Positions 3,352 to 56,279 of a stretch of 64,000 nucleotides of DNA are shown piece after piece. The stretch is taken from positions 124,001-188,000 of the IMG/VR virus record IMGVR_UViG_3300029922_000001. One strand, 5' to 3'. The notes beneath the pieces were generated by a model that worked only from the letters and a program-made list of their open reading frames with translations, ran no database searches and was not told the origin of the DNA. The position numbers and the translations under genes were made by a program. Within the stretch, counting starts at the first letter, position 1, and the number at the start of each line of letters is the position of its first letter.

Positions 3352-3369
3352 AATCTGTATAAAACAATT

Positions 3370-6669: not shown

Positions 6670-6935
6670 TGCGTTTTAATACTTTTGCAGATTTAGTGGA
6701 TTCAAAAATAAATGATTCACAATTAGTGGATTTGGTATCAATACAGTCTAGGGGTTCGATGTCTATTCAGTTTTCTGATGATAGCCTTGCTCCTAATGAA
6801 CTTCTGCCAGTAACAGGTGTAATGGCTTGTGATAATAATTCATATTGGGGAATTACACCAATAATTGACCAGGATTTTCCTGATTCATCAGGAATGAATG
6901 CCACACCAAGTGGCGGCACAACTGTTAACACATAA
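6669..6935 (+). CDS. Small hypothetical protein, translationally coupled to the hub-like gene
   Basis: TAATG stop/start overlap at 6667-6671; 88 aa. Confidence 0.6.
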   Translation: MRFNTFADLVDSKINDSQLVDLVSIQSRGSMSIQFSDDSLAPNELLPVTGVMACDNNSYWGITPIIDQDFPDSSGMNATPSGGTTVNT

Positions 6936-6999
6936 ATCAGAGAAATTTAGAACGGTCACTTGATGTAATTGTGTATAAATTAAAATACAGGAATAATTA

Positions 7000-26417: not shown

Positions 26418-29400
26418 ATGAATTCCACGGAACACTACCAGTATACATACGTAGAAGCCAATGACATCCTATATCCGGGTTATGATCAAAGAAATATGCA
26501 AATAACTGAAAATCAGCTTGCACAGCTTGCTTATTTTATTGGTTCAGGTGTTTTAACAGGGTGGGTAGTGACACCAATTGTATCAACCGATCCTCAACAA
26601 GAAGTAATTTATCAGGGTGAAAGATTAAGTCTTTATAGCAGTTACTTAACAAAATCTAATATAAACTTGGCGCAACAATATCTAAATATGGGTAAGCCAG
26701 CGGATACTTATGCACCTTGTTTAGTTTGTGTTACTGCAAATATATCTAATTTTAGCAGTGTTAATATTTCTTATTTTGATGGCTTAGGAAGTTCTGATTT
26801 AGTGGCTAATTCTAGAGTTTTAGTTACCAATCAAACAATTATAGCTCATAATGGTATTTACACCACAACTGTCAATTTAGATGGAACATATACCTTAACC
26901 CCATCAACGGTATCTAATGAGGTTGTAGGGCAGACCATTCTAAATCCAAGCAAGATTCAAATATTAAAGGGTGTTAATTATGGTAATACCATTTTTACCT
27001 TCATGAAGCCAACAGGTTATACTTACACTTTTGGCGGTTCATTACCAAGTGGTTTATCTAATGTGCTTTATAGTATGAATTGGATTTTAGACTCACAAGC
27101 TACCAATGTGAGTTGGAATCAAGTTATCAGAGTAACACCAGGTACAGGAATTTTAGGTTCTTATAGAGCATATACCGAAGATACAGCTTATTTTGCTTAC
27201 ACTCAAGGTGGAACTTACTATGTGTGGCTTCAAGCTGGTCCATGTTTAATAACTCAAGGTATTGCTCAAGTTGTTGCACCATTAGACCAAGACTATAATT
27301 ATGATCAAACTAATTTAGCTACATTTTTAGCTACAGTAGATGTTTTGCCCAATACAGAAGCTGGTTATGGTTTTTATATTGATCCAATACGAATTACACC
27401 AGATAAAAGAGTAACTATTGCTGGATTTGCTACAGCACTTCAAAATGCACTTAAAATCTTATTACGTGGTCACGTTCATACTGGCGTAGGTCAAATGCCT
27501 ACTAAGATCAATTTAAGCACAGTTATTGTGTATTTTGCTTATCCAAGTACAACATATCCCGATGCCACTAGTTTCCAAATAGGTACAGGTAGTGGGTCTA
27601 GTTTTGTGCCAGCAACTAATTTACCTACCACATTAGGTAAACCAGTAGTAACGCTTAATGATGTAGTATTATTAGCCGATCAATATTATTTAAATTATAG
27701 TACTGGAATTATTTATTTGCAAAATAGTATTCCAGCTAATTCAGTTATAGAACTAGAATTTCCAGCAGCACCACAAATTAACTTGACTCCAACAAACACT
27801 ACTGCATATGGATTAGATGTTCCTATTTATTTAACTGATGGAACAACAGACTTAGGTGGCAGTGGTAATCAGGGAACATTTAGGTGGAATCCTGACAATT
27901 ACATGACTCCACAAGTGTACTTTAATGGTAACTTAATTGTTTTAAATGTAACACAACCTCAATATTTGGTTGATCCTACTAATGGATGTATCACGGTTTA
28001 TAGTAGCTCTGGATTAACACTACCAACAACAGAATCTCAATTGGTTGTTGTATTAGTGGAACGTGTATATCAAATTACCAATACATTATCTTCTAAGAGA
28101 ATTGGAAGCATAGATGCTAGTACATTTATTACTGGAACAATAGATCCAACTAGATTAGGGCAGATTAGTCACGTTGGAGAAACTAGATTAAATGAGATTG
28201 CATTATTACAACCAACTCAAAGAGTATTTGCTGAAGATGATCATGTAACATTCTTGCCAGAAATACCAAATTCTCCATTCCAATATGGAACTGAAGTTTA
28301 TTTCACCTATAAATCTATTAATTTACCATCTAATTCCACATTATTAGGTACTAAAAGAGGTTTAATGGCAACTGATGATATGATTAATATCATTAATCAA
28401 TCTAGTTGGAATGTTGATTATGGTCAACCGGTACAAGCAATTGATAATTTGATGCCAGAAACTCCGTTAGATCCTAATGCCGTACAACCAAATAATAATG
28501 TATTCAAAACATTGTATGTAAGAACTGAACAAGGGCAAATCTTTGAAACAACAAATGAAGGTGCTTCATGGAAAACATTAAGAATGCCTCAGTTTACAAA
28601 TTTTGAAGGTATTACCTCCCCATTATCTGCCACTGCGTTTTGGTGTTACACAGATATGGAGTTGACATCAGGTGATTTACAGACTACCACTTATAGTTAT
28701 TTTACTAGATTGTATGTAGGTACAGCACAAGGTTTATTTACAACAGTAATTTATCCCGCCGCGCCCACTGATTGGGCATGGACACCAAGCTCAAATCAAG
28801 GTGAGTCGATTAATGATGTAGTCGTTATTGCAACTTTAAATAGCACTATCACTTATAGTGGTTCTTCATTAGCTATTACTAATCAATCTTATGACGCTAC
28901 AGTATATACAGCAACAGATAATGGAATTTTTGTTAATGGAGCGCAATTTAATTATCCAGGCATGGATTTAAGTATTAATGGTGTTAAGTGGGTTAATTTT
29001 GGAACTGAAAATGTCAATAAAAACAGCTTACTATATTACAGTGATCAAAAACTATGTCTAACGCACTCCGCAGTATGTACAGATTACACTGTATCTGGTG
29101 ATAACGATACGGTAACTGCTTATTATTCATGGGTACATCCTCTAACACAAGTTCCAAATATTTTTGAGTACCCAAATGGTCAACCAGGTGTTAAAGCCGC
29201 TACCACTACTAACATTAGTATTACTCCAAGCAGTTCCAACTTTATATTACCAATACAGATAGATACTGTATCTATGACATGGGCGGTAAATGATTTAATT
29301 TTAGTTAAACAACAAAATAATTCTTATGAAAATGGAATTTATAAAGTTATAACTGTTAATAACGATATTATAGACGGTATAAATACAGGAACTTTAGTAT

Positions 29401-32400
29401 GTTCTCAACTTGCAGTCACTAACAATGTTCAGGTTCAAGTTATTCAAAATTCTCCAGCAACAGAAGTTACAAATAGTCAACAGTATGGTTCACAATGGTT
29501 CTTGCCAAATGGTCCAGATCCAACCAACCCTAATACAACTTCTTGGAATTTATATTTTTATCTATATGATCGTACTGATAATCCTAATTATGGTCAAGAA
29601 GATTTTCAATATACTAATGCCTCTTTGATTCAATTAACTCAACAGTACTTTTTAGGTTGTTTACCGGCACCTTTGATTATTACTGATCAAAATATTGGTA
29701 TAATGCCAATATTTACTCCAATAATATATTGGAATAATAGACAATATTTACCACAAAGTGCTTTTTACCTTGATATTTCCATAAATAATGTATCTACTAA
29801 TGTTTTTATTGCCCTTGGCACTCGTGGAGCGTGGTATACTGAGGATTTTGTAGGCTGGGGTAGTTGGATGCGCTTAAATCCACAATTTACAGTATTAGAT
29901 ACTGTGAGAGTTCCAACCTTATGGGTTGGTGAAAAGTATTATTTATCTCAAGCAATGCCTGTAAGTGTTTTTGAAGCAGTTCCAACAGCGTATCCTTCTA
30001 CAAGTAATATTCCATTGGTTTTATATTACAATGAAGATTTACAAATATTTGAATTTTCTAATCAACAGCCAATATATGATAATTACCTATATCTAGATAG
30101 CTATACTGAATACTTTGTAAAACCTTGGAATCCTTTAGCAACTGTTATTGTTAAAGTTAACAACGTTTTAGCCGCTCCTACTTACGTACCTCAAAATGGA
30201 CAAATTATATTTAGTAATTCATTAGGTCCAAATGATATTGTGACATTTACGGCTATTCTTGCTGGTGCATTTATTAGCAATGTTGGTACAATACCACACG
30301 AAGAACAACCTAGTGTTTTTGTAGTACAAAATGGTCCAACTTCACCAAATATTACATTAGCGGCACAATTCCCATCTGCAAATGCTAGTTTAGCAAATCA
30401 AATTCAGGTAACTACACCTTCTTTGATTCCTAGTGGTTATTCTTTGATAGAAGTTAGCCAATCAATAGGTAGTACAGTTAACGAAGTTCTCTATATTTAT
30501 AAAGATCCTATTACTTCCAATATAGAATTGGCAAAACCAAGAGTTCAACAAACGGTTATGCCAACCTACGCTGCTGGATCACCTGTTTATCTAGTTGTTC
30601 TGCAAAGCGTACCAGGATTACAAGATTATGTATCTCAATTCATGTCAGGTCAAATGTATAATCAAAATTCTTCTTTCTTAAATAACATAATTTCACTTAA
30701 TCTTAGTTGTTTAGAATTGACAAAATCAGATTCCACATTAATGTTCCCTAACTTATTACATAATTATGCGACAATGCCATTAGAAGGTACTCTTGACACT
30801 CGTGGTCCTCAAAATGCCGCATACTACACTAATGAGAACCAATTTGAAGATGTTTCTTCAGCTAACTCTTTAGCTATTGAATATAATCCACCAATATCAC
30901 AGTTACCAACCGCACCACAAGCTGTTTACAACTTAGATTTAAGTTCATCAACTTCCATTGTTGGTACTGATCAAGGAATTTGGCAATTTAGCTCTGGAGA
31001 TAATATGTGGACGCAAATAAGCCAATTAAATTCTTCCAGAAGAACATATTTCATCTACCCAGTTGATAACCCAAGTGGCGCACAATTGGTAGGTACTGAA
31101 CTTGGTTTATTTGAAGTTGAAGGTAATAATTGGGTAGCAAATCCTACATTTTATGAAGCTGTATTTGATTACTGGAGTGGTTCATGGAATACTTCATACA
31201 CAGGAACTTTTTATGCTAAAAATGACGGTTTAAGCTTTACTCAATTTGATCCATCAACTAACACCTTTGTATCTGATAATTTTGATCCACTTTACGGTGA
31301 AAAACTTTATACTCTTTATAAAGATCAATGGTTAAGGGCTGGCACAGATACTCCACCTACTTTTACTGCTGTAGACGCAATGTATATTGGTTCGGCATTA
31401 GGATTATGGGCGGTTACACCAGGTGGTAGAGTTGGAATTAATCACCCTACATATTTGGCAGGTAGAAATATGATTCCAGCATCTGAATTAACCAGGGTTG
31501 GTATCAATAATCCATTATGGGTTTATAAGATTGCTTTAATGCCAAATAATAGCACGGCAAATCCTCCTAGCGCACCAATGATGGTTTTAAGTAATCAAGG
31601 AATATTAATCATTCAAAATTGGAGATATTGTGATCCAGATCCAACAGATACTAGTGCTTTAAATTTCTATATTGAGAAGGTTGTACTTCCTGGTTATACT
31701 TGTAATTGTGTTACTAGTTTAGTAACATCTACTTCACCTTATGCTTCTGTGGTTTACGCTGGTACCAACGTTGGAGTGTTTAAATCTATAAATAATGGTT
31801 GGGACTTCCAAAGATGCGAATGGATTAATGATGAACCTACTCCTGTTTATGATTTACAAATAATGGATTCAGCAGGTTTAGTTGTTATCGCTGCTACAGA
31901 AACTGGATTATGGATGACTACTGATGGTGGTTATACTTGGATTAGACCTTCTTTGTCAAGTGGATTGTCACCTAATAATTTCTTCCCAGGAGAAATTACT
32001 AGTTCATATTCATTCTCTTATCCAAAATTAGGACAAACTTTTACAACTCCAAGCACACCAAGTACAATTGATATTACTAAATTTGGTGCTTATCTTACAA
32101 GAAGAACCTTAGTAAATCCAAATACGGGAGTTGTTGATGATGCTATGAATCAAGCCGCTGCTAACAATAAATTAATGTTGGCACTATACGCCACAGATGG
32201 TAGTGGTAATCCTACTGGTTCTGCATTAAGCTTAACAAGTTTTGAAAGTTATATAAACTGGGGTGTTGGTTATGAAGTTACACCTTCTGGAACGAATTTG
32301 TTTGATGGTTCTCAAGTTATGGATAACGAACCTAATGATATTAGCACATATTATCAAGTGGTTGGTGGCAGTACAAATAATTCAGCTATGACGTTGTTAT

Positions 32401-35400
32401 ATAAATTTGATAATGCAGTTGAAGTTGATGCAGTTGATTTTACAGTTATGAGTACTCAAGTGTTAAATGTCAATATTGAGCATTCAAGCGATGGTTCTAC
32501 ATGGACAACTGCTATTGCCACTAGTCCAACCGTATATGCCCCACAAAATGCAGGTGGTGTACCATTGTGGCGTACTGCTGAATTGTTAACTAATACATCA
32601 ACACCATATCAATATTGGAGAATATCCTTTACTGATATTCATTCTTCATATCCAACATTATTAAGAGTAGGTGACTGTAGATTATACGCTATTAATGGTG
32701 GAACTTATACATTACAAACTCTATATTCCGCAATTAATGCATATGAAGTTAATTACCCATCTTTCTGGTACATGGATGCCGTTCCAAGTTCTTCAGGATC
32801 TTTAACGCTAACAGCAAATACCCAATATATTTTAGTTGGATCTGAATTACTCAGTGAACAAATTATATCAGTTATGAATGGTTATAGCGTTAGTTCTGGT
32901 AACTATTTAGAATACGGTTCTGTATTTGAATGGGCGATTTCTTCTGATGATGAATTTGTAGGGGGAGACGCAGAATATTCAAGTGATGGTTCTACTTGGA
33001 CCGCATTACCACAAGACTTTTTGTTTGCGGTATTTTACGCTTCTCCACCAGTGCCAACTAATACTATTGTTGTTGTTGGACAATATGATGGAACCAGTGA
33101 ATTTGATCAAGGTGATATGTATGGTGCAATTATCAATGATGCTGGTGGACTTACTACTGACTTTAAGGTTGCTACTTCTATTGTTGTAGATGATTCTAAA
33201 TCTATTTCTTGGGCTGATGATCTTAAACAACGTGGACCTATGATTTACGATCTATATTCTAAGATTTATTCTCAGTGTAATGGAAGATCACAGTTGGACT
33301 ACTGGCAATTTGGTGTTAACGAACTTGAATTAACACCTGGGTTTGTTTATGATAATAGTATTGTTGACCTAGAAAATACAATTAATAATTTCATAACAAG
33401 AGGTACAAATAGTAACTTAGTAGACACTTGTTTTATTGCGTTTATGGGATTAAGTCCACAATCTATCATAGATTCTATTTTGCCTGTTCCTAATTTACCA
33501 AACCAAGTTTATAATCAAGCTCTTGTTGAACCAATCATTACTTACATGGAAAGTAAAGGATTATTGAGATTATCTTGGTTACAAACACAATATGCAACAG
33601 AATTAGGAGCGCATACGCTAGTTGCTTCCGATTTATATACTCCTAATGGGTCTGATCAATTACCTTACCTAGATATAACTACTGCTGTTATAACAGCGTG
33701 GGCTAATAGCTTTGTTCCTTTGGCAATTGTTCTAGCAGATGGTGATGATAGTAATAGTCTAAACGCTCCTACAGATGTTGCTTCTGTGGCACTTACTGGT
33801 TGGAATAATTATGGTTTTAGTATATATAGTGGTGGTTTAGGAACTGGAAGTAATCAACCAAATCTAAGAAGTATGTCTGAATTATCCAATGGTAATCATT
33901 CGATTTTGGTTACAGGAATGGATGAAAATGGATTATTAATACCAGGTTCAGATTGGGATAATTTCGGTAATTCATTCTTGCCACAAGGTACAAATAATAT
34001 TTTCCAATCCACTTGGGCTAGGGAGTACGATTTTGAAACACCTACATTTATAAGTAATATTATTGCTACTGTTAATGTAATACCAAATGGTCAGGCTTTT
34101 GGTCCAAATTCAGCAAAATGTAATATTGAGTTCATGTACACCTTAGATAGAACCAATTGGACTTCATGGATTAATATTGCTTCACAATTAAACGATAATA
34201 GCGGAACATATACTTATCAATTGAATATGCAAGTTTTAGCTATTAAATATAACATTGTCATGTCAGAAGCTTTAGCCGGGGGTCAACAACCTGTAATCTC
34301 TGAACTATATCATATAGTGGTTACTCCAGCAGTTAAATATTTAGTTACTCCTAAAACACAAGTAAATGGATTATTATTTGAATATTTGTTAGATGCAGAC
34401 ATTACAGTTCCACAATCTTGCCAAGTCAATTGGGGAATTGCTAGAGGTGATTCAATCAATTGGAACGATTTTGAAAGTATTTACACAAGGAGAAAAGGTG
34501 CTTTATCTAATAGACAAAACAGCATTACCTTCTCTCAGCCTGTTAATTTACGTGACTTACCACACACAATTAATGCAGCTAATGACTATGTTCAAGTATA
34601 CACCGATCAGGCAGAAACCATAACAGCTTCATGGTCACTATTAGATACAGTTCAAATTTGGATTCAAATTACAACGTCTCTAAATGGAAACTATGAAACA
34701 GACGGTAGTGCTATTCTTATGCAACAAAATGTAGGTGGTGTCCAAGTTTATCAGCTTGATGGAGTAAATGGAACTATAGCATTTAGTCCTCCACTACCTA
34801 CAGGTACTATATTTCATATAGATATTAATGCGCCATCCCAGGTTTCAAACAGTGTTGGTGAAAGCACCATAACCAAAGACAATAGAACGTATTTTTCTGT
34901 TAATGGTAGTTGGGTATATGATTCTACAGTTTATGTCATCTTACAAACATCTTTTGGTGGTACACCACAATTAATTCGTGGAGGTTATTGGTTGAACCCA
35001 TCTGAAGGTTCTGTTACTTTTAGTCAAGAAAGGCTAGTTACTGATATAATAAAACTGTTTATTGTTTCAGATGGTTATTTTAGAATAGGCGCACAAGTTT
35101 TAAATTACACATCTCAAGATGTGTCTATTAATGATTTTGGTATGTATTATAGTGTGGCTCAAAATGAATCTATTGGCGCATTATTATCCACTAATTCATC
35201 TATTTCTTTAATGAACAATCAAGTTGTATTAAGTCCTCAGCCAGCTAGTGTTGGACAAAATATTTTAGATATTAATTACGTTGTAGTTACTAATGATGGT
35301 AGCACAGAGCAAGGGTCTATTATTACATGGTGGGTTGGAAGACCTGGTTTTACTGGTTCAAGTACTACACCTTATTCTGAGTTTGATGCAGCTAACCAAT

Positions 35401-35954
35401 TATGGTTTAAGAGGATACATGTTAATAATATTGCGTCTTTCACTGGTACTACTTATAATTCTGGTACATTCCCAGTGTATGATGGCAGAATATTGTCATT
35501 GCCAGCAGATCAAACTTCTGGATTATTCCAAAATGGGGACATTGTATATGTCAAAGTAGTTCCAAGTAATGGTATAGTTTATGGTACATTAACAAAATCA
35601 AATATTATTAAATTCTTAGGATATTCAATTCCTGTGATTACAAACTTAGCTATTAATAATGTGGTTATTAAGACAGTTAATAACACAACGCAATATCAAA
35701 TTCTAAAAACACAAGATTTGGTACCAACTATCACGATGTCACCATCTTATAGTCCACCAAATGTCACATATTCTATTAATTGGTATTTAACTACAAATAA
35801 TACGCCAGTAAATACTAATGGTAATGCAATTCTACCATCTAGCCAAACAGTGCTTGGTTCAACATACTATTGTGTAGCGCAACCTTTTAACAATGGTGTG
35901 CCTGGTCCAATGGTATTTAGCGAACCAATTACAATTGTGACATTAACTTCATAA
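26418..35954 (+). CDS. Giant (3178 aa) virion protein with BNR/Asp-box propellers, discoidin-like and VWA domains
   Basis: Asp-box-like FETTNEGASW, FKSINNGWDF and MTTDGGYTW; F5/8-like IEHSSDGSTWT..YQYWRI; VWA MIDAS IVVDDSKS plus IVLADG. Confidence 0.7.
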   Translation: MNSTEHYQYTYVEANDILYPGYDQRNMQITENQLAQLAYFIGSGVLTGWVVTPIVSTDPQQEVIYQGERLSLYSSYLTKSNINLAQQYLNMGKPADTYAPCLVCVTANISNFSSVNISYFDGLGSSDLVANSRVLVTNQTIIAHNGIYTTTVNLDGTYTLTPSTVSNEVVGQTILNPSKIQILKGVNYGNTIFTFMKPTGYTYTFGGSLPSGLSNVLYSMNWILDSQATNVSWNQVIRVTPGTGILGSYRAYTEDTAYFAYTQGGTYYVWLQAGPCLITQGIAQVVAPLDQDYNYDQTNLATFLATVDVLPNTEAGYGFYIDPIRITPDKRVTIAGFATALQNALKILLRGHVHTGVGQMPTKINLSTVIVYFAYPSTTYPDATSFQIGTGSGSSFVPATNLPTTLGKPVVTLNDVVLLADQYYLNYSTGIIYLQNSIPANSVIELEFPAAPQINLTPTNTTAYGLDVPIYLTDGTTDLGGSGNQGTFRWNPDNYMTPQVYFNGNLIVLNVTQPQYLVDPTNGCITVYSSSGLTLPTTESQLVVVLVERVYQITNTLSSKRIGSIDASTFITGTIDPTRLGQISHVGETRLNEIALLQPTQRVFAEDDHVTFLPEIPNSPFQYGTEVYFTYKSINLPSNSTLLGTKRGLMATDDMINIINQSSWNVDYGQPVQAIDNLMPETPLDPNAVQPNNNVFKTLYVRTEQGQIFETTNEGASWKTLRMPQFTNFEGITSPLSATAFWCYTDMELTSGDLQTTTYSYFTRLYVGTAQGLFTTVIYPAAPTDWAWTPSSNQGESINDVVVIATLNSTITYSGSSLAITNQSYDATVYTATDNGIFVNGAQFNYPGMDLSINGVKWVNFGTENVNKNSLLYYSDQKLCLTHSAVCTDYTVSGDNDTVTAYYSWVHPLTQVPNIFEYPNGQPGVKAATTTNISITPSSSNFILPIQIDTVSMTWAVNDLILVKQQNNSYENGIYKVITVNNDIIDGINTGTLVCSQLAVTNNVQVQVIQNSPATEVTNSQQYGSQWFLPNGPDPTNPNTTSWNLYFYLYDRTDNPNYGQEDFQYTNASLIQLTQQYFLGCLPAPLIITDQNIGIMPIFTPIIYWNNRQYLPQSAFYLDISINNVSTNVFIALGTRGAWYTEDFVGWGSWMRLNPQFTVLDTVRVPTLWVGEKYYLSQAMPVSVFEAVPTAYPSTSNIPLVLYYNEDLQIFEFSNQQPIYDNYLYLDSYTEYFVKPWNPLATVIVKVNNVLAAPTYVPQNGQIIFSNSLGPNDIVTFTAILAGAFISNVGTIPHEEQPSVFVVQNGPTSPNITLAAQFPSANASLANQIQVTTPSLIPSGYSLIEVSQSIGSTVNEVLYIYKDPITSNIELAKPRVQQTVMPTYAAGSPVYLVVLQSVPGLQDYVSQFMSGQMYNQNSSFLNNIISLNLSCLELTKSDSTLMFPNLLHNYATMPLEGTLDTRGPQNAAYYTNENQFEDVSSANSLAIEYNPPISQLPTAPQAVYNLDLSSSTSIVGTDQGIWQFSSGDNMWTQISQLNSSRRTYFIYPVDNPSGAQLVGTELGLFEVEGNNWVANPTFYEAVFDYWSGSWNTSYTGTFYAKNDGLSFTQFDPSTNTFVSDNFDPLYGEKLYTLYKDQWLRAGTDTPPTFTAVDAMYIGSALGLWAVTPGGRVGINHPTYLAGRNMIPASELTRVGINNPLWVYKIALMPNNSTANPPSAPMMVLSNQGILIIQNWRYCDPDPTDTSALNFYIEKVVLPGYTCNCVTSLVTSTSPYASVVYAGTNVGVFKSINNGWDFQRCEWINDEPTPVYDLQIMDSAGLVVIAATETGLWMTTDGGYTWIRPSLSSGLSPNNFFPGEITSSYSFSYPKLGQTFTTPSTPSTIDITKFGAYLTRRTLVNPNTGVVDDAMNQAAANNKLMLALYATDGSGNPTGSALSLTSFESYINWGVGYEVTPSGTNLFDGSQVMDNEPNDISTYYQVVGGSTNNSAMTLLYKFDNAVEVDAVDFTVMSTQVLNVNIEHSSDGSTWTTAIATSPTVYAPQNAGGVPLWRTAELLTNTSTPYQYWRISFTDIHSSYPTLLRVGDCRLYAINGGTYTLQTLYSAINAYEVNYPSFWYMDAVPSSSGSLTLTANTQYILVGSELLSEQIISVMNGYSVSSGNYLEYGSVFEWAISSDDEFVGGDAEYSSDGSTWTALPQDFLFAVFYASPPVPTNTIVVVGQYDGTSEFDQGDMYGAIINDAGGLTTDFKVATSIVVDDSKSISWADDLKQRGPMIYDLYSKIYSQCNGRSQLDYWQFGVNELELTPGFVYDNSIVDLENTINNFITRGTNSNLVDTCFIAFMGLSPQSIIDSILPVPNLPNQVYNQALVEPIITYMESKGLLRLSWLQTQYATELGAHTLVASDLYTPNGSDQLPYLDITTAVITAWANSFVPLAIVLADGDDSNSLNAPTDVASVALTGWNNYGFSIYSGGLGTGSNQPNLRSMSELSNGNHSILVTGMDENGLLIPGSDWDNFGNSFLPQGTNNIFQSTWAREYDFETPTFISNIIATVNVIPNGQAFGPNSAKCNIEFMYTLDRTNWTSWINIASQLNDNSGTYTYQLNMQVLAIKYNIVMSEALAGGQQPVISELYHIVVTPAVKYLVTPKTQVNGLLFEYLLDADITVPQSCQVNWGIARGDSINWNDFESIYTRRKGALSNRQNSITFSQPVNLRDLPHTINAANDYVQVYTDQAETITASWSLLDTVQIWIQITTSLNGNYETDGSAILMQQNVGGVQVYQLDGVNGTIAFSPPLPTGTIFHIDINAPSQVSNSVGESTITKDNRTYFSVNGSWVYDSTVYVILQTSFGGTPQLIRGGYWLNPSEGSVTFSQERLVTDIIKLFIVSDGYFRIGAQVLNYTSQDVSINDFGMYYSVAQNESIGALLSTNSSISLMNNQVVLSPQPASVGQNILDINYVVVTNDGSTEQGSIITWWVGRPGFTGSSTTPYSEFDAANQLWFKRIHVNNIASFTGTTYNSGTFPVYDGRILSLPADQTSGLFQNGDIVYVKVVPSNGIVYGTLTKSNIIKFLGYSIPVITNLAINNVVIKTVNNTTQYQILKTQDLVPTITMSPSYSPPNVTYSINWYLTTNNTPVNTNGNAILPSSQTVLGSTYYCVAQPFNNGVPGPMVFSEPITIVTLTS

Positions 35955-46880: not shown

Positions 46881-47287
46881 TATTTATTTTTCTTCTTAGT
46901 TTTCTTTTCTTCTTTTGGAGTTTCGTATCCCAAAGCTGCCATTTCCTTTTCAGTATTACGATTAATTGCTGCTTCAACTGAGAACTTCTCACCGTATCTA
47001 GCTTTTAGCTTGGCAATATTCGCATCTAAGATTTTATCAAAATCAAAATTAGAAGCATCGCATAAAATAGCGGTATACCACATTAAGTCTCCGACTTCCT
47101 CAAAAAGATTTTCGTAATCTAGTGGTTTTTTGTAATAAATATGCTTTTTCATTTGATCTAAGAGTTCCGCAGATTCGGTACATAGACCAATGACAGCATG
47201 AAGTTGACGAATAGATGTTTTGTCATCAATCAAATCAGGTACACTTTCTGTACGCTTACAATTTTCGATATAGGTTTTAAATTCCAT
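46880..47287 (-). CDS. MazG-like all-alpha NTP pyrophosphohydrolase
   Basis: GLCTESAELLD..KK, EEVGDLMWY, NIAKLKARY. Confidence 0.88.
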   Translation of the reverse strand: MEFKTYIENCKRTESVPDLIDDKTSIRQLHAVIGLCTESAELLDQMKKHIYYKKPLDYENLFEEVGDLMWYTAILCDASNFDFDKILDANIAKLKARYGEKFSVEAAINRNTEKEMAALGYETPKEEKKTKKKNK

Positions 47288-47320
47288 AGCTTATTGTAGG
47301 TTTTTTTGTATAAAAAGAGC

Positions 47321-47839
47321 ATGAGTGTGTATTTTGTTGATTCGGAATTTTACGAAGACGGAGAAATAATAGATTTATTATCCATTGCTATCGTGGCAAA
47401 TGATAATAAACAATATTACGCTGTGAATTCTGATTTTAACTTCACTAGAGCCAATAAAAATAAATGGCTCAAGGAAAACGTCTTGAAACATATTGATTTG
47501 GAGGATAAAACAAATCAAAGAAGTAAAAAACAAATTAAATCAGATATTTTAAAATTTATTGGTGATGATAAATCCCCGAAATTTGTGTCAGATTATTGCA
47601 GCTATGATTATATTGTGTTATGTCAAATATTTGGTAAAATGATTGATCTGCCTGATAATTTTCCTATGTATTGTAATGATCTACAAATGTTAAAGAAGAT
47701 AGTTGGTGCTAAGGATTCTGAATTGCCAACTTTGCCAAACGAACATCATGCACTTAATGATGCCTGTCAAGTACGCGAACAATGGTTATTCTTAGAAAAG
47801 CGTTTTCAGGAAAAATTCAAACAAAAACTGGTTTTTTAA
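47321..47839 (+). CDS. DEDDh 3'-5' exoribonuclease (Rv2179c/RNase AS-like)
   Basis: YFVDSEFYEDG, WLKENVL, YDYIVLCQIFGKMIDLP, HHALNDA. Start at ATG 47321, 6 nt after TATAAA. Confidence 0.85.
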   Translation: MSVYFVDSEFYEDGEIIDLLSIAIVANDNKQYYAVNSDFNFTRANKNKWLKENVLKHIDLEDKTNQRSKKQIKSDILKFIGDDKSPKFVSDYCSYDYIVLCQIFGKMIDLPDNFPMYCNDLQMLKKIVGAKDSELPTLPNEHHALNDACQVREQWLFLEKRFQEKFKQKLVF

Positions 47840-47847
47840 GAATACCC

Positions 47848-47877
47848 TTGACAAACTTCAGAGATTGTGGATATAAT
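47848..47877 (+). promoter_or_regulatory. Consensus sigma70 promoter of the RNA array
   Basis: TTGACA (47848-47853), 18-nt spacer, TATAAT (47872-47877). Confidence 0.8.
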
Positions 47878-47886
47878 ATCAGTGTT

Positions 47887-47925
47887 ATGAAAACTATGGA
47901 CTTGAAACTTAAACGTAAGCGTTAA
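47887..47925 (+). CDS. Putative leader peptide MKTMDLKLKRKR
   Basis: 12 codons starting 9 nt after the -10 box; 4 Lys codons (3 AAA, 1 AAG); followed by alternative hairpins. Confidence 0.5.
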   Translation: MKTMDLKLKRKR

Positions 47926-48039
47926 TTTCTTCTCTCCCAAATTTTGCGGAGTGGAAGAATTCCTCTGCAAAAAGTCCATAATATTTTCCATCTTATTTAC
48001 TTATGTAGAGGTCATCGTGTGTAGTGATCTTTAATTTTT
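47895..48039 (+). promoter_or_regulatory. Attenuator-like structured leader
   Basis: TATGGACTT(47895)/AAGTCCATA(47972). TTTTGCGGAG(47942)/CTCTGCAAAA(47963) competes with CTTCTCTCC/GGAGTGGAAG. Hairpin TAGAGGTCAT/GTGATCTTTA plus ATTTTT at 48006-48039. Confidence 0.45.
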
Positions 48040-48046
48040 AGTATAT

Positions 48047-48117
48047 GGGGATGTAGCTCGACGGTCGAGTTAGAGCCTTTTAAGCTCAAGGCGTGGGTTC
48101 GATTCCCTCCGTCCTCA
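48047..48117 (+). tRNA. tRNA-Lys(TTT), atypical D arm
   Basis: Acceptor GGGGATG/CGTCCTC; anticodon arm GAGC-CTTTTAA-GCTC; T loop TTCGATT; no encoded CCA. Confidence 0.85.
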
Positions 48118-48127
48118 CCGAGAATAT

Positions 48128-48198
48128 GGGAAGTTAGTTCAATGGTAGAGCGGGAGAATCTAAATCTCCTAATGAGGGTTCGATTCCCTCACTTCCCA
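48128..48198 (+). tRNA. Amber suppressor-type tRNA (anticodon CTA)
   Basis: Acceptor GGGAAGT/ACTTCCC; D arm GTTC/GAGC; anticodon arm GGAGA-ATCTAAA-TCTCC; T arm GAGGG-TTCGATT-CCCTC. Confidence 0.88.
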
Positions 48199-48211
48199 CC
48201 GAGATAAATAT

Positions 48212-48284
48212 GGGAATAAAGCATAAAGGGTGATGCAGTTGGCTCTTAACCTTCAGAACCTGGGCTCGACCCCCGGTGTTCCCA
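48212..48284 (+). tRNA. Degenerate tRNA-Lys(CTT)
   Basis: Acceptor GGGAATA/TGTTCCC; loop CTCTTAA; anticodon stem with two T-T mismatches, A8 and T loop CTCGACC. Confidence 0.65.
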
Positions 48285-48294
48285 CGAGAAATAT

Positions 48295-48367
48295 GGGGAT
48301 ATAACTCAATTGGTAGAGTGGCAGACTCTTAATCTGTAAGTTTGGGGTTCAAGTCCCCATGTCCCTA
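48295..48367 (+). tRNA. tRNA-Lys(CTT)
   Basis: GGGGATA/TGTCCCT; ACTC/GAGT; GCAGA-CTCTTAA-TCTGT; TGGGG-TTCAAGT-CCCCA. Confidence 0.92.
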
Positions 48368-48376
48368 CGAGAGCAA

Positions 48377-48701
48377 TTTGAATTTTGGGAAGTTGGCTTA
48401 GAAACAGCTATCTTATAATGAGTGTCAAGTGGAATGCATCAGGACGAATATAGGTATGAGAAATCTGAATAATCTATCGTGCGCGGTAGATTAATACTGA
48501 AATTCGGTTGGTACTGATGTCGTGTCTCAGCTATCCCAGCATGAGGACGTAGAACCACAGGGGAAGGACAAGTGCAGTATTAATAATATGTTTGGTAGGC
48601 GAAGCTACCGAACTAAGTAGAGGAAGGTAAGGGATAGGATATTCTACAATGTTATTAATGACCCTTAGAGACTTTGGCGTAGTAGCACACCAAAATTCAA
48701 A
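48377..48701 (+). ncRNA. ~325-nt structured RNA containing a split mimic of 23S rRNA H43/H44 (GTPase-associated centre)
   Basis: Perfect 12-bp terminal helix TTTGAATTTTGG/CCAAAATTCAAA. 48387-48423 joined to 48677-48691 aligns without gaps to 23S nt 1054-1105 (reference recalled from memory). Several internal helices; same CGAGA trailer as the tRNAs. Confidence 0.8.
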
Positions 48702-48712
48702 ACGAGATGTAA

Positions 48713-48808
48713 GGGGGTATAGCTTAGTGGTTAAAGCTGGAGACTTTTGGAGTATTTCATGGAATATTGCAAAATCTCTAGACTAGGGTTCGATTCCCTG
48801 TGCCCCTA
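48713..48808 (+). tRNA. tRNA-Lys(TTT)-like with a 24-nt insert in the anticodon loop
   Basis: GGGGGTA/TGCCCCT; GCTT/AAGC; GGAGA-CTTTT-[48749-48772]-AA-TCTCT; TAGGG-TTCGATT-CCCTG. Confidence 0.75.
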
Positions 48809-48846
48809 CCGAGATTAAGACAAGTTTTATATGTATAAACACAAGT

Positions 48847-49176
48847 ATGTGCTGTAATAATTTTGAATATAATATACATCTAGGTCACCCTGTAGACTTA
48901 GAAATTGCCAAATACAAAACAATTAAACTTCTTCCTCGTCACCGAAAAATAAGTCCCTTAATTACGTGGATTATTAGAGATGATGATGGAACAGTACTGG
49001 GCACTACAGAAACTCATGGTTTAGAAATGAATGATCCAGAAATTAAGGGGATTTTACAAGAAGCTAAAGAAGCTTATCAATATAGAAATAGACTTTATGT
49101 TAAGTATGATACATGTAAAGATGAGTACGATAAGCTTGCCGTATTAACTACAATAAGATATGATTATCATACTTGA
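48847..49176 (+). CDS. Hypothetical protein
   Basis: 109 aa; TGTATAAA-7nt-ATG start. Confidence 0.65.
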   Translation: MCCNNFEYNIHLGHPVDLEIAKYKTIKLLPRHRKISPLITWIIRDDDGTVLGTTETHGLEMNDPEIKGILQEAKEAYQYRNRLYVKYDTCKDEYDKLAVLTTIRYDYHT

Positions 49177-50020
49177 CGATGCTGCAAACCAAGATATTAA
49201 TGATACAGTATCAATGATCGCTAGTAGAATGGGAATGAATAACGTATATCATATTCCAGATCGTGACGATTTAACATACGATGAACTTCTATGGCATATT
49301 CCCACAAAAGATGATCCTGAAAAGGCAATTTGGATCGGTTACATTCCTTTACAAGACAAATACGATGATCTTTATCAAGAATTGAAGAATAAAAACATTT
49401 ATTTAGTTAATGATCCTAAACAACATCAAAAAGCTATGGAATTTGACTTGTTTTATCCTATTATCAGAGAATACACACCACAAAGCGTAACTATAACTAA
49501 TATTGTGTCTTGTAAAACTGTTGCTAAAATTTTAGGATTTCCCATATTTGTAAAAGGTGCAATAAAATCAGAAAAAGAAAAAGGTATTAAAGCTTGTAAA
49601 GCAGACAATTTAGAAGAACTCAAAACTTTAGTAGATCCAATTTTGAAACAAACTTATAGGTCTAGAAATAAAGCTGTTTGCCGTAAATATGTCCCATTAA
49701 AATATGTTAAAAAAACTCCTGGTGATTTTCCTATAGGTAGAGAATATCGTTATTTGATGTATTGTAATAAAATTATAACAAGTGGCTATTATTGGGGCGT
49801 AGAAGATGAGTTATCTAAATTAAGTCATTCTGAAAAACAAGAAGTTGATAATTTAGCTATTATGATTTCTAAAAAATTACAAATACCTTTAATTGCTATA
49901 GATATTGGACAGCTTGATTCTGGAGAATGGATTGTAATTGAAGTTGGCGATCCCCAATGTTGTGGAGTATCACATTCGATGGCTTTTGAATTTTGGAATA
50001 AAATAGTTGTATATGAATAA
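49160..50020 (+). CDS. ATP-grasp domain protein (R2K/DUF4343-like)
   Basis: FPIFVKGAIKS, REYRY, IAIDIGQLDSGEWIVIEVGDPQCCG. Confidence 0.8.
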   Translation: MIIILDDAANQDINDTVSMIASRMGMNNVYHIPDRDDLTYDELLWHIPTKDDPEKAIWIGYIPLQDKYDDLYQELKNKNIYLVNDPKQHQKAMEFDLFYPIIREYTPQSVTITNIVSCKTVAKILGFPIFVKGAIKSEKEKGIKACKADNLEELKTLVDPILKQTYRSRNKAVCRKYVPLKYVKKTPGDFPIGREYRYLMYCNKIITSGYYWGVEDELSKLSHSEKQEVDNLAIMISKKLQIPLIAIDIGQLDSGEWIVIEVGDPQCCGVSHSMAFEFWNKIVVYE

Positions 50021-51908: not shown

Positions 51909-52703
51909 ATGAAACAAGATAAAGATGCTTTAGGCAACAGAATGAAGGATCATGAACACCGAACACGGATTTTACTTCCGCGTAGAACAAATACAATGAT
52001 TAGGCTTGATGGAAAAGCTTTTCATACCTTTACAAAAGGATTCAAACGTCCTTTTGATACGGATTTAATGAATATCATGAATCAAACAGCATTAGAAACA
52101 TGTTCTACAATTCAAGGTGCCAAGTTTGCTTATGTTCAATCTGATGAAATTACTATTTTGGTTACAGATTACGAAACTGATGCATGGTTTGATGGTAATA
52201 TCCAGAAGATGACATCAATTTCAGCTTCTTATGCAACATCTGCGTTCAATGCTCATTATGGTAAATACATTTACGATCAAAATCCTAGCGAGTTTGACCC
52301 CTTAAAGGTTAAAAAAGCTAATTTTGATAGCCGTGTATGGACTTTAGCTGATCCTAATGAAGTTATTAATGTTTTAATTTGGAGACAACAAGATTGTGTA
52401 AAAAATAGTATTTCTATGGCAGCACAATCAATGTTCTCTCAGAAAGAATTGCAAAATAAGCATTCTGACGACATGCAAGAGATGATGTGGCAAAAAGGCG
52501 TCAATTGGAATGATTATACTGTTGGCGAAAAGCGTGGTCGTTTTATCGAAAAGATTTCCACACAAAAGGATATCGAATACATAGATAAGCGAACTGGTGA
52601 AAAACATATCAAAGAAGGTGTTATTCGATCTAAATGGAAAGTCGTAGAACCACCAACTTTTTCAACAGACAAAGACTTTATTCGTCGTTTCATGCCCATT
52701 TAA
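51909..52703 (+). CDS. Thg1-like tRNA(His) guanylyltransferase / 3'-5' polymerase
   Basis: IRLDGKAFHTFT, AYVQSDEIT, WFDGNIQKM, FDSRV, WRQQDCVKNSI. Confidence 0.93.
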   Translation: MKQDKDALGNRMKDHEHRTRILLPRRTNTMIRLDGKAFHTFTKGFKRPFDTDLMNIMNQTALETCSTIQGAKFAYVQSDEITILVTDYETDAWFDGNIQKMTSISASYATSAFNAHYGKYIYDQNPSEFDPLKVKKANFDSRVWTLADPNEVINVLIWRQQDCVKNSISMAAQSMFSQKELQNKHSDDMQEMMWQKGVNWNDYTVGEKRGRFIEKISTQKDIEYIDKRTGEKHIKEGVIRSKWKVVEPPTFSTDKDFIRRFMPI

Positions 52704-53099: not shown

Positions 53100-54268
53100 A
53101 GGAATCTTAATATATACATAAGAATTTATATTTATGCTTATAAATAGATCTATTCAATATAGATTATATCCTAACAATAAACAAATTAAATTATTATCTA
53201 ATAATTTGGAAGGTTGTAGACTACTTTATAATCAAATGTTGAATCAAAGAAAAGAAGGATGGGAACAAGATAAGCAATCCTTTTCTTGTTATGATCAGCA
53301 AAAATATTTTAAAGATTATCTAGATAAACTAGAATATAATATTCATGCTCAAGTTAAACAAAATGTTGCCGTTAGAGTTGACTTAGCTTTTAAGGCTTTC
53401 TTTCGTAGAATTAAAAATAAAGAAAATCCAGGTTATCCTAGATTTAAATCTTTTGGTAGATATGATTCATTCACTTATCCTCAAACTGATTACGGATATA
53501 AAATTAAAGATAAACAAATATATTTATGTAAGATAGGTAATGTTAAAGTTGTTATTCATAAACAAATCACTGGATTTATCAAAACATGTACTATCAAGAA
53601 AGAAAGTGATAGATGGTTTGTTATTTTTACTTATGAAGCAGAATCAACATCTTATGAATCTTCTACTAATTTAGAGATTGGTATTGATGTAGGTTTAAAA
53701 TCTTTTGCAGTGTTCTCAGATAATACAACTATTGATAATCCTAGATTCTTTAAACAAGAAGAAAAGAATATTGGAAGATTACAAAGACGAAAAGAAAAAG
53801 CTAATGGTAATCAAAAACAAAAATTAAAGAAAGCTATTCAAAAACGTCATGCTAAAGTTAAAAATAAGAGAAAAGATTTTTGTCATAAGCTTTCGAGATC
53901 AATCGTCAATAAATATAAAATTATTTGCATTGAAGATTTAAACATTAATCAAATGAAAGAAAACATGAGATATTTATCAAAAAGTATTCATGATGCTTCT
54001 TGGAAACTATTCTTGAACTATCTAATCTATAAAGCGGAAGAAGCTGGTAGATTATTAATTCAAGTCAATCCTGCGTATACTACCCAGGATTGTAGTAAAT
54101 GTGGTTATAGAGTTAAAAAGAAGCTTTCAGATCGTATTCATAATTGTCCTAATTGTGGACTCTCTATGGATCGTGATCTAAATGCTTCCCTAAACATTTT
54201 GAGAATAGGATTATATTCTCTTGGTATTAAATCCATAGAAGATTCTTTTAATTAAGAATAGTAATCAC
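53100..54268 (+). mobile_element. Solo-TnpB (IS1341-like) element
   Basis: No TnpA. The 3' end AGAAG-ATTCTT-TTAATT-AAGAAT-AGTAATCAC resembles an IS605 right-end hairpin ending in TCAC (54265-54268). Left end not defined. Confidence 0.6.
53134..54255 (+). CDS. tnpB: TnpB RNA-guided endonuclease (IS200/IS605 OrfB), intact D-E-D triad
   Basis: HTH YRLYPN, GYPRFKS, IGIDVGL, ICIEDL, CSKC..CPNC, DRDLNASLNI. Confidence 0.95.
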   Translation: MLINRSIQYRLYPNNKQIKLLSNNLEGCRLLYNQMLNQRKEGWEQDKQSFSCYDQQKYFKDYLDKLEYNIHAQVKQNVAVRVDLAFKAFFRRIKNKENPGYPRFKSFGRYDSFTYPQTDYGYKIKDKQIYLCKIGNVKVVIHKQITGFIKTCTIKKESDRWFVIFTYEAESTSYESSTNLEIGIDVGLKSFAVFSDNTTIDNPRFFKQEEKNIGRLQRRKEKANGNQKQKLKKAIQKRHAKVKNKRKDFCHKLSRSIVNKYKIICIEDLNINQMKENMRYLSKSIHDASWKLFLNYLIYKAEEAGRLLIQVNPAYTTQDCSKCGYRVKKKLSDRIHNCPNCGLSMDRDLNASLNILRIGLYSLGIKSIEDSFN

Positions 54269-55337: not shown

Positions 55338-56279
55338 TTACTCTTCGTCGGTAACATATTTTTTATGAGCAGGGTTCTCTTTTTTAAAGATTCTAGCGTA
55401 ATATTCTTCATAAGTATTAAAAACTTCTCTTGTAGTTACAACAAAGTAAATCTTTTCAATTTGAGATTCTTGGTTTTCTTCAAAATATCTTAATACAGCA
55501 GAAATTTGAGCTAAAGCACCTTGATAAACATTAAGAGTTCCGCAATCCATAGGGGTAATAACTAAACTCTTGCATTGTATACTGTCAGCTAACAATAATG
55601 AACGGTTAGTTGCAGTAGAAATGTATTTTTCTTCTGTTAATCCTCCACCACCTGATACAATAGCGTGGGCAACACTCTTGAAAGGTAATTCTGGAATATT
55701 AGATGCATCAGTGTTGTAAACATGACCCATTTTAATAGGAACACCATTTTCATTAATTCTATTAAGTTGATTTTGTAGTTTAAAACCACTTAAAGTTTGC
55801 AATACTGGATCAAGAATTTCTAATAGGTTGTTATTTGGATATACAAGCATATCAGCTTTAACCTTATAGGGAGAAGGGACTAAATGAACAGAAATTTTCA
55901 CATTGTCAATACTAGGCTTGTAGGCTTGTGGTTTTTCATCATCATTTTTACGATAAGGTTGATAATCTTCAACGACTTCATTACCAATCACAACGTCTTC
56001 TTCGGAATTCCAATCGTACATGCTGTGTAAGAAAACACAGTTCTCATATTTACCGCGACAATTTTCATCCCACTTTTCATTATTGATATAATGTTGTTTA
56101 TTTGGGACAATATCATTAAAAACACCAATTAGAGGATTGACAAACTTTTTATTGTCTTCATCAAATTCTTCTTCCACCATGTTTTTAAAAACACAATCAT
56201 ATTGTGAATTGTCAAATATTACATAAAATGGACATTCTGCACATGCCTGTTGTATAGAAAGTATTTTTATTTTTTTCAT
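55338..56279 (-). CDS. Protein with C-terminal divergent macrodomain
   Basis: KADMLVYPNNNL, GHVYNTDA, KSVAHAIV, KSLVITPMDCG and IEKIYFVV follow macrodomain motif order; the canonical NAAN and GGG are altered. Confidence 0.75.
   Translation of the reverse strand: MKKIKILSIQQACAECPFYVIFDNSQYDCVFKNMVEEEFDEDNKKFVNPLIGVFNDIVPNKQHYINNEKWDENCRGKYENCVFLHSMYDWNSEEDVVIGNEVVEDYQPYRKNDDEKPQAYKPSIDNVKISVHLVPSPYKVKADMLVYPNNNLLEILDPVLQTLSGFKLQNQLNRINENGVPIKMGHVYNTDASNIPELPFKSVAHAIVSGGGGLTEEKYISTATNRSLLLADSIQCKSLVITPMDCGTLNVYQGALAQISAVLRYFEENQESQIEKIYFVVTTREVFNTYEEYYARIFKKENPAHKKYVTDEE

Follow-up and report, generated by a model that had tools for sequence, protein, structure and literature searches.

A phage RNA family resembling the GTPase-associated center of 23S ribosomal RNA in viral tRNA arrays

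The element and its match to 23S rRNA

The 64,000-nt stretch of DNA analyzed here (positions 124,001–188,000 of IMG/VR virus record IMGVR_UViG_3300029922_000001; hereafter, the window) carries a five-tRNA array with a candidate noncoding RNA (48377–48701, plus strand) located between tRNA-Lys(CUU) and tRNA-Gln (Table 1). The upstream tRNA ends 8 nt before the terminal helix of the element and the downstream tRNA starts 11 nt after it. An open reading frame (ORF) scan found no ORF of at least 50 amino acids overlapping the element. The two ends pair in a perfect 12-bp helix formed by TTTGAATTTTGG (48377–48388) and CCAAAATTCAAA (48690–48701). The original prediction, made by a model from the letters of the window, had described such a helix closing an RNA of approximately 325 nt inside a tRNA array, and its coordinates and sequence agree with ours.

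When joined, nucleotides 48387–48423 and 48677–48691 align without gaps to positions 1054–1105 of the 23S rRNA of Escherichia coli, with identity at 40 of the 52 positions. This segment covers helices 43 and 44 (H43/H44) of the GTPase-associated center (GAC). The reference was the actual rrlH sequence of E. coli K-12, which gave exactly the score that had been approximated (about 40 of 52). The longer segment, a 37-mer (48387–48423), matches at 28 of 37 positions; the runner-up in the window reaches 22/37 on the plus strand and 23/37 on the minus strand. As had been proposed, most of the differences are compensatory. Nine of the twelve fall in five base pairs and pairing is retained in all five (1054–1105, AU to GC; 1058–1080, UA to AU; 1082–1086, UA to AU; 1090–1101, AU to UA; and 1062–1076, GC to GU). 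The other three are at unpaired positions (1071, 1089, and 1096). Furthermore, G1089 and U1090 of the window copy match the bacterial consensus of the Rfam large subunit (LSU) rRNA model, and A1067 (48400) and A1095 (48681) are both retained, as predicted.

The element shares with the bacterial GAC (23S nucleotides 1051–1108) H43, the 1082–1086 pair, and the H44 hairpin, as well as the loops UUAGAAGCA and GUAAUA and the tertiary-contact nucleotides U1060, A1077, and A1088. Pairs that covary in rRNA also covary in the element. It differs from the rRNA domain in its surroundings, because flanking rRNA is absent, tRNAs lie on either side in a phage array, and a helix of free sequence rather than helix 42 (H42) closes it. 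It also differs within H44, whose strand 1087–1092 is uninterrupted in rRNA, whereas the element has a helix at 1090/1091, the linker UUUG, and A rather than U at 1101. The Rfam model LSU_rRNA_bacteria (RF02541) aligns 48386–48441 to model positions 1094–1147 with 14 bits (E = 0.038) against a gathering score of 50. A scan against Rfam 15, at the gathering thresholds and at E ≤ 10, recovered the tRNAs and this weak partial match and nothing else, so that neither LSU rRNA, GOLLD, ROOL, nor group I introns gave a full-length family match.

The extra helix closes a variable domain, which spans 253 nt in the window copy. Single-sequence folding of this insert was no better than that of shuffled sequences (z = −1.4), and no internal helices were conserved when the eight closest relatives were aligned.

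Family, architecture, and covariation

Searches with blastn against GenBank phages identified both halves of the element, arranged in the same order around a shorter middle part, in Aeromonas phage 4_4572 and in Rak2-like jumbo phages (Serratia BF, Erwinia pEa_SNUABM_12 and relatives, and Xanthomonas XbC2). Cronobacter GAP32, Pectobacterium CBB, and Yersinia fHe-Yen9-04 initially matched in the 3′ half only; both halves were later recovered in GAP32 and CBB. The 5′ half identified additional cultured carriers: Ralstonia RSP15; Pseudomonas pf16, Milchi, Astolliot, and UNO-G1W1; Paenibacillus Pd_22F; Xanthomonas XacN1; Vibrio phage 2.275.O; and Acinetobacter ME3. The element is annotated in none of the cultured-phage records found by blastn. 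A pattern built on the 5′ half matched 56 IMG/VR loci, including the 441,498-bp viral contig from which the window derives (L049), and a pattern for the 3′ half alone matched at least 120 further viral loci and at least 120 loci in bacterial genome assemblies.

A covariance model trained on 40 short members, with the window copy excluded, finds positions 48375–48703 at 81.4 bits (E = 7e-24). This is the sole significant match in the window, the next being a 9-bit hairpin (E = 0.27). The model returned 99 matches in 100 viral loci and approximately 31 full-length members among 100 genome loci, where the other pattern matches were due to chance. After duplicate removal, the family comprises at least 158 distinct elements in viral contigs, cultured phages, and prophage-like bacterial contigs. 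Members occur in assemblies labelled Bacillota, Bacteroidota, Chloroflexota, Nitrospirota, Pseudomonadota, and others, mostly on contigs with phage-type tRNA arrays, and some reside in prophage-like regions of isolates such as Flintibacter muris. The element thus has homologs that keep both halves. The original prediction had not recognized it as a described family, and we likewise found no Rfam family for it and no description in open-access papers or bioRxiv. A large and strongly structured family has apparently escaped description. Two loci stand out for their copy number: one (L212) has two full copies in a single tRNA array (3990–4350 and 5198–5392, plus strand), and another (L088) has a second, strongly diverged copy (4827–4948, minus strand) with a shortened H43 loop and without the canonical 3′ half.

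To evaluate the structure we used the 99 covariance-model matches, which represent 90 distinct sequences. Standard pairs occupy 93.2% of the cells, compared to 68.4% in column shuffles, and the covariation score (0.564, versus 0.144 in shuffled alignments) was reached by none of 500 shuffles. As a control, sliding the pairing partners by one to three columns gave scores of 0.18 or lower. Unguided folding of the alignment with RNAalifold recovered the terminal helix, H43, and the helix that closes the insert, with compensatory changes in 17 of 23 pairs. The nine pairs of the terminal helix have 11–52 double changes each, and the four pairs of the insert-closing helix have 28–44 each. Within H43, both sides change at 1057–1081, 1058–1080 (seen as G-C, U-A, and A-U), 1059–1079, 1062–1076, and 1064–1074, and one side only changes at 1063–1075 (GC to GU). 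The 1082–1086 pair forms in 43 of 44 sequences, as U-A, A-U, or C-G. Because both search patterns fix some sequence, we judged the conservation of a given half solely in the set that had been anchored on the opposite half. For example, the compensatory changes at 1062–1076 and 1064–1074 are seen in the set anchored on the 3′ half, in which the 5′ half was free to vary. Hence, the structure is under selection outside of any rRNA operon, as had been suspected from the window copy, with helices that covary over 90 sequences and loop nucleotides kept that are invariant in rRNA.

All members follow a common plan. A terminal helix of approximately 9–12 bp of free sequence is followed by G or A at 1056, opposite A1103, and by H43 with the loop UUAGAAGCA. 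Next comes a UAA turn closed by the 1082–1086 pair and the GAGU strand (1087–1090). The insert, closed by a helix of 3–4 bp, lies between 1090 and 1091 in every member and leads to the single-stranded UUUG, the hairpin GC-GUAAUA-GC, ACA, and the return strand of the terminal helix. Insert length varies from about 25 to 369 nt, and the shortest inserts are bare hairpins of approximately 25 nt (L068, L092, and L151; whole element, 105 nt). The insert sequence has no family-wide conservation. Thus, the 253-nt insert around which the original prediction had drawn the element is present in the window copy and is not a fixed part of the family.

The conserved positions are those of rRNA: G1059–C1079, U1060, A1077, the 1065–1073 loop, A1088, and 1093–1095/1098. 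In the set anchored on the 5′ half, 1091–1095 and 1098–1100 are invariant and only 1096 and 1097 vary. GAGU, which was fixed by the pattern in that set, is kept in nearly all members of the set anchored on the 3′ half, where it was unconstrained. The sole systematic change at a conserved rRNA position, relative to the Rfam bacterial consensus, is U1101 to A. A1101 was found in 44 of 44 sequences although the search left the position free, and it pairs with U1090 in all of them. The UUUG linker is present in 39 of the 44. Together, the U1090–A1101 pair and the linker convert H44 into a three-way junction, where the extra helix branches off. The compensation at 1090–1101 noted in the original prediction therefore holds as a retained pair; what had been read as a swap relative to E. 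coli is a family-specific, invariant U-A pair that closes the new junction, bacteria having U1101.

Some members depart from this plan. A subgroup (L156, 400–630; L066, 800–995, minus strand; L128, L134, L150, L157, L129, and L102) carries a further variable hairpin, inserted directly after A1077 on the 3′ strand of H43, indicating that two sites of the GAC fold tolerate insertions. One member of the subgroup (L102, 1020–1215, minus strand) also has rRNA-like H42 flanks, with GACAGCCAGG identical to E. coli 1046–1055 and CACUGGCCGAGCC resembling 23S 1102–1114. These flanks suggest that the family descends from captured 23S rDNA. We also identified a module within the insert (AGU..GNC-ACC-CC(R)-tetraloop, often GNRA,-(Y)GG-UAAG-GNC) in 36–39 of the 158 members (e.g., L003, L013, L076, L114, and L174); the window copy lacks it. 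The module is fixed at 43 nt from the end of the element and its GNC/GNC pairs covary. A search of the module profile against the E. coli 23S rRNA gave no significant match, and a resemblance to the sarcin-ricin loop noticed by eye was not reproducible, so we rejected the idea of a second rRNA mimic in the insert.

Genomic setting

Table 1. Features of the window copy and of its neighborhood (window coordinates).
Feature	Position	Strand	Remark
MazG-like pyrophosphohydrolase	46883–47287	−	
Rv2179c-like 3′–5′ exoribonuclease	47321–47836	+	
Candidate promoter, TTGACA, 18-nt spacer, TATAAT	47848–47877	+	12/12 consensus; called from the consensus match alone
tRNA-Lys(UUU)	48047–48119	+	ARAGORN/Rfam
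Suppressor-type tRNA(CUA)	48128–48200	+	ARAGORN/Rfam
tRNA-like	48212–48284	+	Rfam 45 bits, not called by ARAGORN
tRNA-Lys(CUU)	48295–48368	+	ARAGORN/Rfam
5′ strand of the 12-bp terminal helix	48377–48388	+	occupies the place of the top of H42; last two G are 1054–1055
H43 equivalent (23S 1057–1081), 1065–1073 loop UUAGAAACA	48390–48414	+	A1067 at 48400
1082–1086 turn, AUAAU	48415–48419	+	1082–1086 pair is A-U in the window copy
GAGU (23S 1087–1090), 5′ strand of lower H44	48420–48423	+	same as the Rfam LSU bacterial consensus GAgu
Variable inserted domain, 253 nt	48424–48676	+	between 1090 and 1091
Insert-closing helix	GUC 48424–48426 with GAC 48670–48672	+	
Conserved single-stranded linker UUUG	48673–48676	+	
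H44 hairpin (23S 1091–1100), GC-GUAGUA-GC	48677–48686	+	A1095 at 48681
A1101-C1102-A1103, then 3′ strand of the terminal helix (48690–48701)	48687–48701	+	
tRNA-Gln(UUG), 98 nt, 27-nt insertion in the anticodon loop	48713–48810	+	ARAGORN/Rfam
R2K-clade ATP-grasp enzyme	49160–50017	+	
Thg1-like tRNA 5′-end repair enzyme	51909–52700	+	
TnpB/IS605 OrfB gene	53134–54252	+	
Macro-domain protein	55341–56279	−	6.5 kb from the element

The association with tRNA genes extends to the family. ARAGORN called 848 tRNA and transfer-messenger RNA (tmRNA) genes at the loci of the 158 distinct elements, and all 848 are on the strand of the element. A tRNA lies within 30 nt of the terminal helix in 56 of the 158, and 27, the window copy included, have tRNAs on both sides. 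Phage tmRNA genes are nearby in four loci (L009, L055, L179, and L190). This layout suggests a stable RNA released by tRNA processing. In the window, the candidate promoter is the sole perfect consensus match in the scanned region (47000–49500) and lies approximately 170 nt upstream of the first tRNA; the interval (47878–48046, plus strand) has no ORF. We found no terminator-like site inside the tRNA array.

The array has features of its own. It carries two tRNA-Lys genes and one tRNA-Lys-like gene, the latter (48212–48284) reading as tRNA-Lys(CUU)-like with mismatches in the anticodon stem, so that it could be a degenerate or decoy tRNA. The intron-like insertion in tRNA-Gln(UUG) is unusual for a phage. 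The suppressor-type tRNA(CUA) and the stop codons of 39 large ORFs in the window (TAA in 36, TGA in 3, and TAG in none, all ORFs being intact under code 11) are consistent with avoidance or reassignment of TAG in this 441-kb phage. Protein uL11 influences release factor 1 (RF1), and we considered TAG recoding or an RF1 link as a general explanation for the element. We dropped it because only five loci have a suppressor tRNA(CUA) close to the element and the Rak2-like jumbo phages, which are among the cultured carriers, are not known to be recoded.

No partner protein emerged from the neighborhoods. When 6,011 neighboring ORFs were clustered all-against-all, the best cluster, an HNH endonuclease, was present in 10 of 124 loci. 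When the closest ORF downstream of the element was assigned to Pfam families at 136 loci, the CCA-adding enzyme headed the census (five loci) and uL11 was absent, and no ribosomal-protein gene was nearby in the 136 loci examined. The lack of a conserved neighbor protein and of a uL11 gene suggests that the partner is probably a universal host component, which fits with the wide host spread.

The genes around the array in the window form a cluster of RNA-metabolism and conflict-type functions (Table 1). In Flintibacter muris DSM 110149 (L266), the element (1110–1305, plus strand) is followed by an ORF for a 260-amino acid DUF6273 protein (1641–2423) and, approximately 1.2 kb downstream of the element, by a region (2522–7398) that encodes a 730-amino acid fusion of polynucleotide kinase, phosphatase, and T4-type RNA ligase and then four DNA methyltransferases. 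These neighbors, together with the tRNA-Lys genes, are consistent hints, and weak ones, of a role in conflict. Elsewhere in the window, three consecutive giant ORFs (13246–21774, 21823–26397, and 26418–35951, plus strand) encode proteins of 2,843, 1,525, and 3,178 amino acids.

Proposed function and alternative explanations

The 23S fragment 1051–1108 (the 58-nt domain) folds alone into a compact, Mg2+- and K+-dependent structure that binds uL11 and thiostrepton and other thiopeptides. The folding and binding of the GAC fragment were reportedly worked out by Draper, Wimberly, and Conn. In the ribosome, the GAC contacts EF-G, the EF-Tu ternary complex, and release factors, and it takes part in the activation of RelA. 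Ribosomes without uL11 are relaxed and have altered termination.

Against this background, we propose that the element is transcribed with the phage tRNA array, probably from the candidate promoter, and that the enzymes processing the neighboring tRNAs would release it, with the terminal helix shielding its ends. As judged from sequence and covariation, the RNA folds as a compact H43/H44 domain with an extra helix branching from H44. It most likely binds host uL11, because the isolated rRNA domain binds this protein and the phage RNA keeps nearly all of the nucleotides conserved in rRNA. So bound, it would present a ribosome-free platform for translational GTPases, RelA-type factors, and GAC-directed toxins. 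That nearly all conserved nucleotides are retained, surface loop bases included, is difficult to account for without recognition of a ligand of the same kind. Such an RNA could work as a decoy or sponge that diverts a host molecule from the L11 stalk base and would either sustain translation on behalf of the phage or adjust it. The best candidate targets are uL11 itself and a GAC-directed defense toxin. The original prediction had suggested a decoy that titrates uL11, RelA, or a toxin, and all of our observations are compatible with such a role. We give about even odds to the reading in which a free-standing, trans-acting RNA mimics the GAC away from the ribosome, binds the uL11 of the host, and serves as a decoy. 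More tentatively, the stand-alone replica could, together with host uL11, neutralize a new class of ribosome-directed immunity or stress factors or strip uL11 from the translation system, which we regard as possible rather than probable.

Known systems provide partial precedents. The leaders of ribosomal-protein operons that mimic rRNA (L1, L10, L20, S15, and S4 leaders; PMC7247131) are also extraribosomal RNAs that copy the protein-binding site of an rRNA, although for the element protein binding is inferred. They are cis-acting parts of cellular mRNAs, sit upstream of the gene that they control, and usually copy a few key nucleotides. In contrast, the element is phage-encoded, lies among tRNAs with no gene conserved downstream, and reproduces an entire 52-nt domain nearly nucleotide by nucleotide. 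No leader of this kind that binds uL11 is described in that source (PMC7247131). The element shares its setting and strand with the stable RNAs of phage tRNA arrays (tRNAs, tmRNA, GOLLD, and ROOL), tRNA-type processing is probable, and the element can be counted among the translation-directed RNAs of large phages, but it matches none of GOLLD, ROOL, HEARO, tmRNA, or tRNA in Rfam and its fold is that of an rRNA domain. We know of no uL11-binding leader of the rRNA-mimicking kind. The closest parallel in proposed logic is the phage pseudo-ToxI RNA, which neutralizes ToxN (PMC3475682), as in both cases a phage RNA would imitate a host RNA to capture a host protein. Pseudo-ToxI imitates an antitoxin RNA, whereas the element imitates an rRNA domain and would only by our proposal capture its partner.

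Several observations weigh against a uL11-binding decoy. The steps beyond the fold are inferred from sequence. Three departures from rRNA, namely the extra helix at 1090/1091, A at 1101, and the UUUG linker, could change the face that the RNA presents to uL11 or to the factors. A1067 is replaced by G in approximately 13 of 121 sequences, and the terminal helix of most members does not retain the rRNA sequence of H42, which makes uL10 binding unlikely. RNAalifold offers an alternative pairing of UUUG with C1102/A1103, and as the H44 pairs are invariant, counts cannot choose between it and the rRNA pairing. With tens of thousands of ribosomes per cell, titration would need very high levels of the RNA or a scarce target. 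The hints from gene neighborhoods are anecdotal, and we know of no defense system or toxin that the element counters.

A narrower version of the decoy reading is that the RNA, with or without uL11, serves as a surrogate substrate or competitive inhibitor for one specific toxin, from a host abortive-infection system or a competitor, that modifies or cuts the 23S GAC, thus shielding ribosomes in the way that phage tRNAs offset anticodon nucleases. The tRNA-Lys is a frequent target of anticodon nucleases, and the element sits in tRNA arrays, in the window near two tRNA-Lys genes. Also in line with this version are the RNA-repair and anti-restriction genes downstream of the Flintibacter element, past one DUF6273 ORF, and the MazG and Macro-domain (an ADP-ribose-removing fold) genes of the window. 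A toxin directed at this site is documented: Tre23 ADP-ribosylates H44 at 1095–1098 and blocks EF-G (PMC8661411). The invariance of loop nucleotides 1093–1095 and 1098 favors this version, but 1096 and 1097, which fall within the Tre23 target window, vary freely. Nor were ADP-ribose or repair genes enriched in the neighborhood census of 136 loci, and our search of the open-access literature and bioRxiv found no anti-phage system that targets the GAC. We know of none ourselves. The decoy would also have to outcompete about 10^4 ribosomes. We consider a specific toxin decoy unlikely. Lower still in our estimation is the idea that the GAC fold, perhaps with uL11, is a nuclease-resistant holder for a variable insert (an aptamer, antisense RNA, or protein-binding module) that does the work. 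Every member has an insert at the same site, up to 369 nt long, and about one quarter of them have the ACCCC-loop-GGUAAGG module at a fixed distance from the junction. However, the insert sequence is not common to the family, the insert can be a bare 25-nt hairpin, and the one in the window folds no better than shuffles. Furthermore, the core is conserved nearly as in rRNA, and this conservation extends to surface loop bases, which would be dispensable in a simple scaffold. We therefore view a scaffold role as improbable.

The setting of the element in Rak2-like phages, between ORFs of the same strand (at distances of 17 nt from the preceding ORF and 40 nt from the following one), could instead point to a cis-acting leader that mimics rRNA within an mRNA to bind a ribosomal protein and control the downstream gene, a type of mimicry that is established (PMC7247131). 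This is very improbable given the absence of a conserved downstream gene and of nearby ribosomal-protein genes in the 136 loci and the many copies that lie within 30 nt of a tRNA or, like the window copy, between two tRNAs. Even less credible, to the point of being negligible, is a functionless remnant of host 23S rDNA, possibly interrupted by a mobile insert such as a degenerate group I intron. The insert is preceded by U and ends in G, like group I introns, homing endonuclease genes (HNH and GIY-YIG) are common nearby, and the rRNA-like H42 flanks of L102 point to an rRNA origin. Nevertheless, every variable helix has compensatory changes across the 90 sequences, the borders of the element are constant, and the members are spread over very different phages and host phyla. 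A group I intron (RF00028) was rejected specifically, as Rfam gave no match at E ≤ 10 and the inserts lack a shared core and can be as short as about 25 nt, too short to be introns. The covariation and the 25-nt inserts likewise rule out a pseudogene or dead rRNA fragment.

A trans-acting GAC mimic, if confirmed, would be the first known case of a virus-encoded, free-standing copy of a functional rRNA center; we found no report of a phage-encoded replica of an rRNA domain in open-access papers or bioRxiv. Phage genomes can encode ribosomal proteins, among them L7/L12 domains, which associate with the same stalk (10.1101/174177). The element would add an RNA to the phage-borne parts of the translation machinery (tRNAs, tmRNA, S21, and L7/L12 domains; 10.1101/174177). 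It would also suggest that an activity of the host, be it a toxin, a stringent-response factor, or uL11 itself, is directed at the L11 stalk base and has to be diverted by phages. The idea can be tested directly, as the family is large and extends to cultured phages of laboratory-friendly hosts (e.g., Pseudomonas putida phage pf16). For structural biology, the family provides natural, independently evolving variants of the GAC with tolerated insertion sites. For the phages that carry it, the element could represent a new, RNA-based viral route to take over or shield translation.

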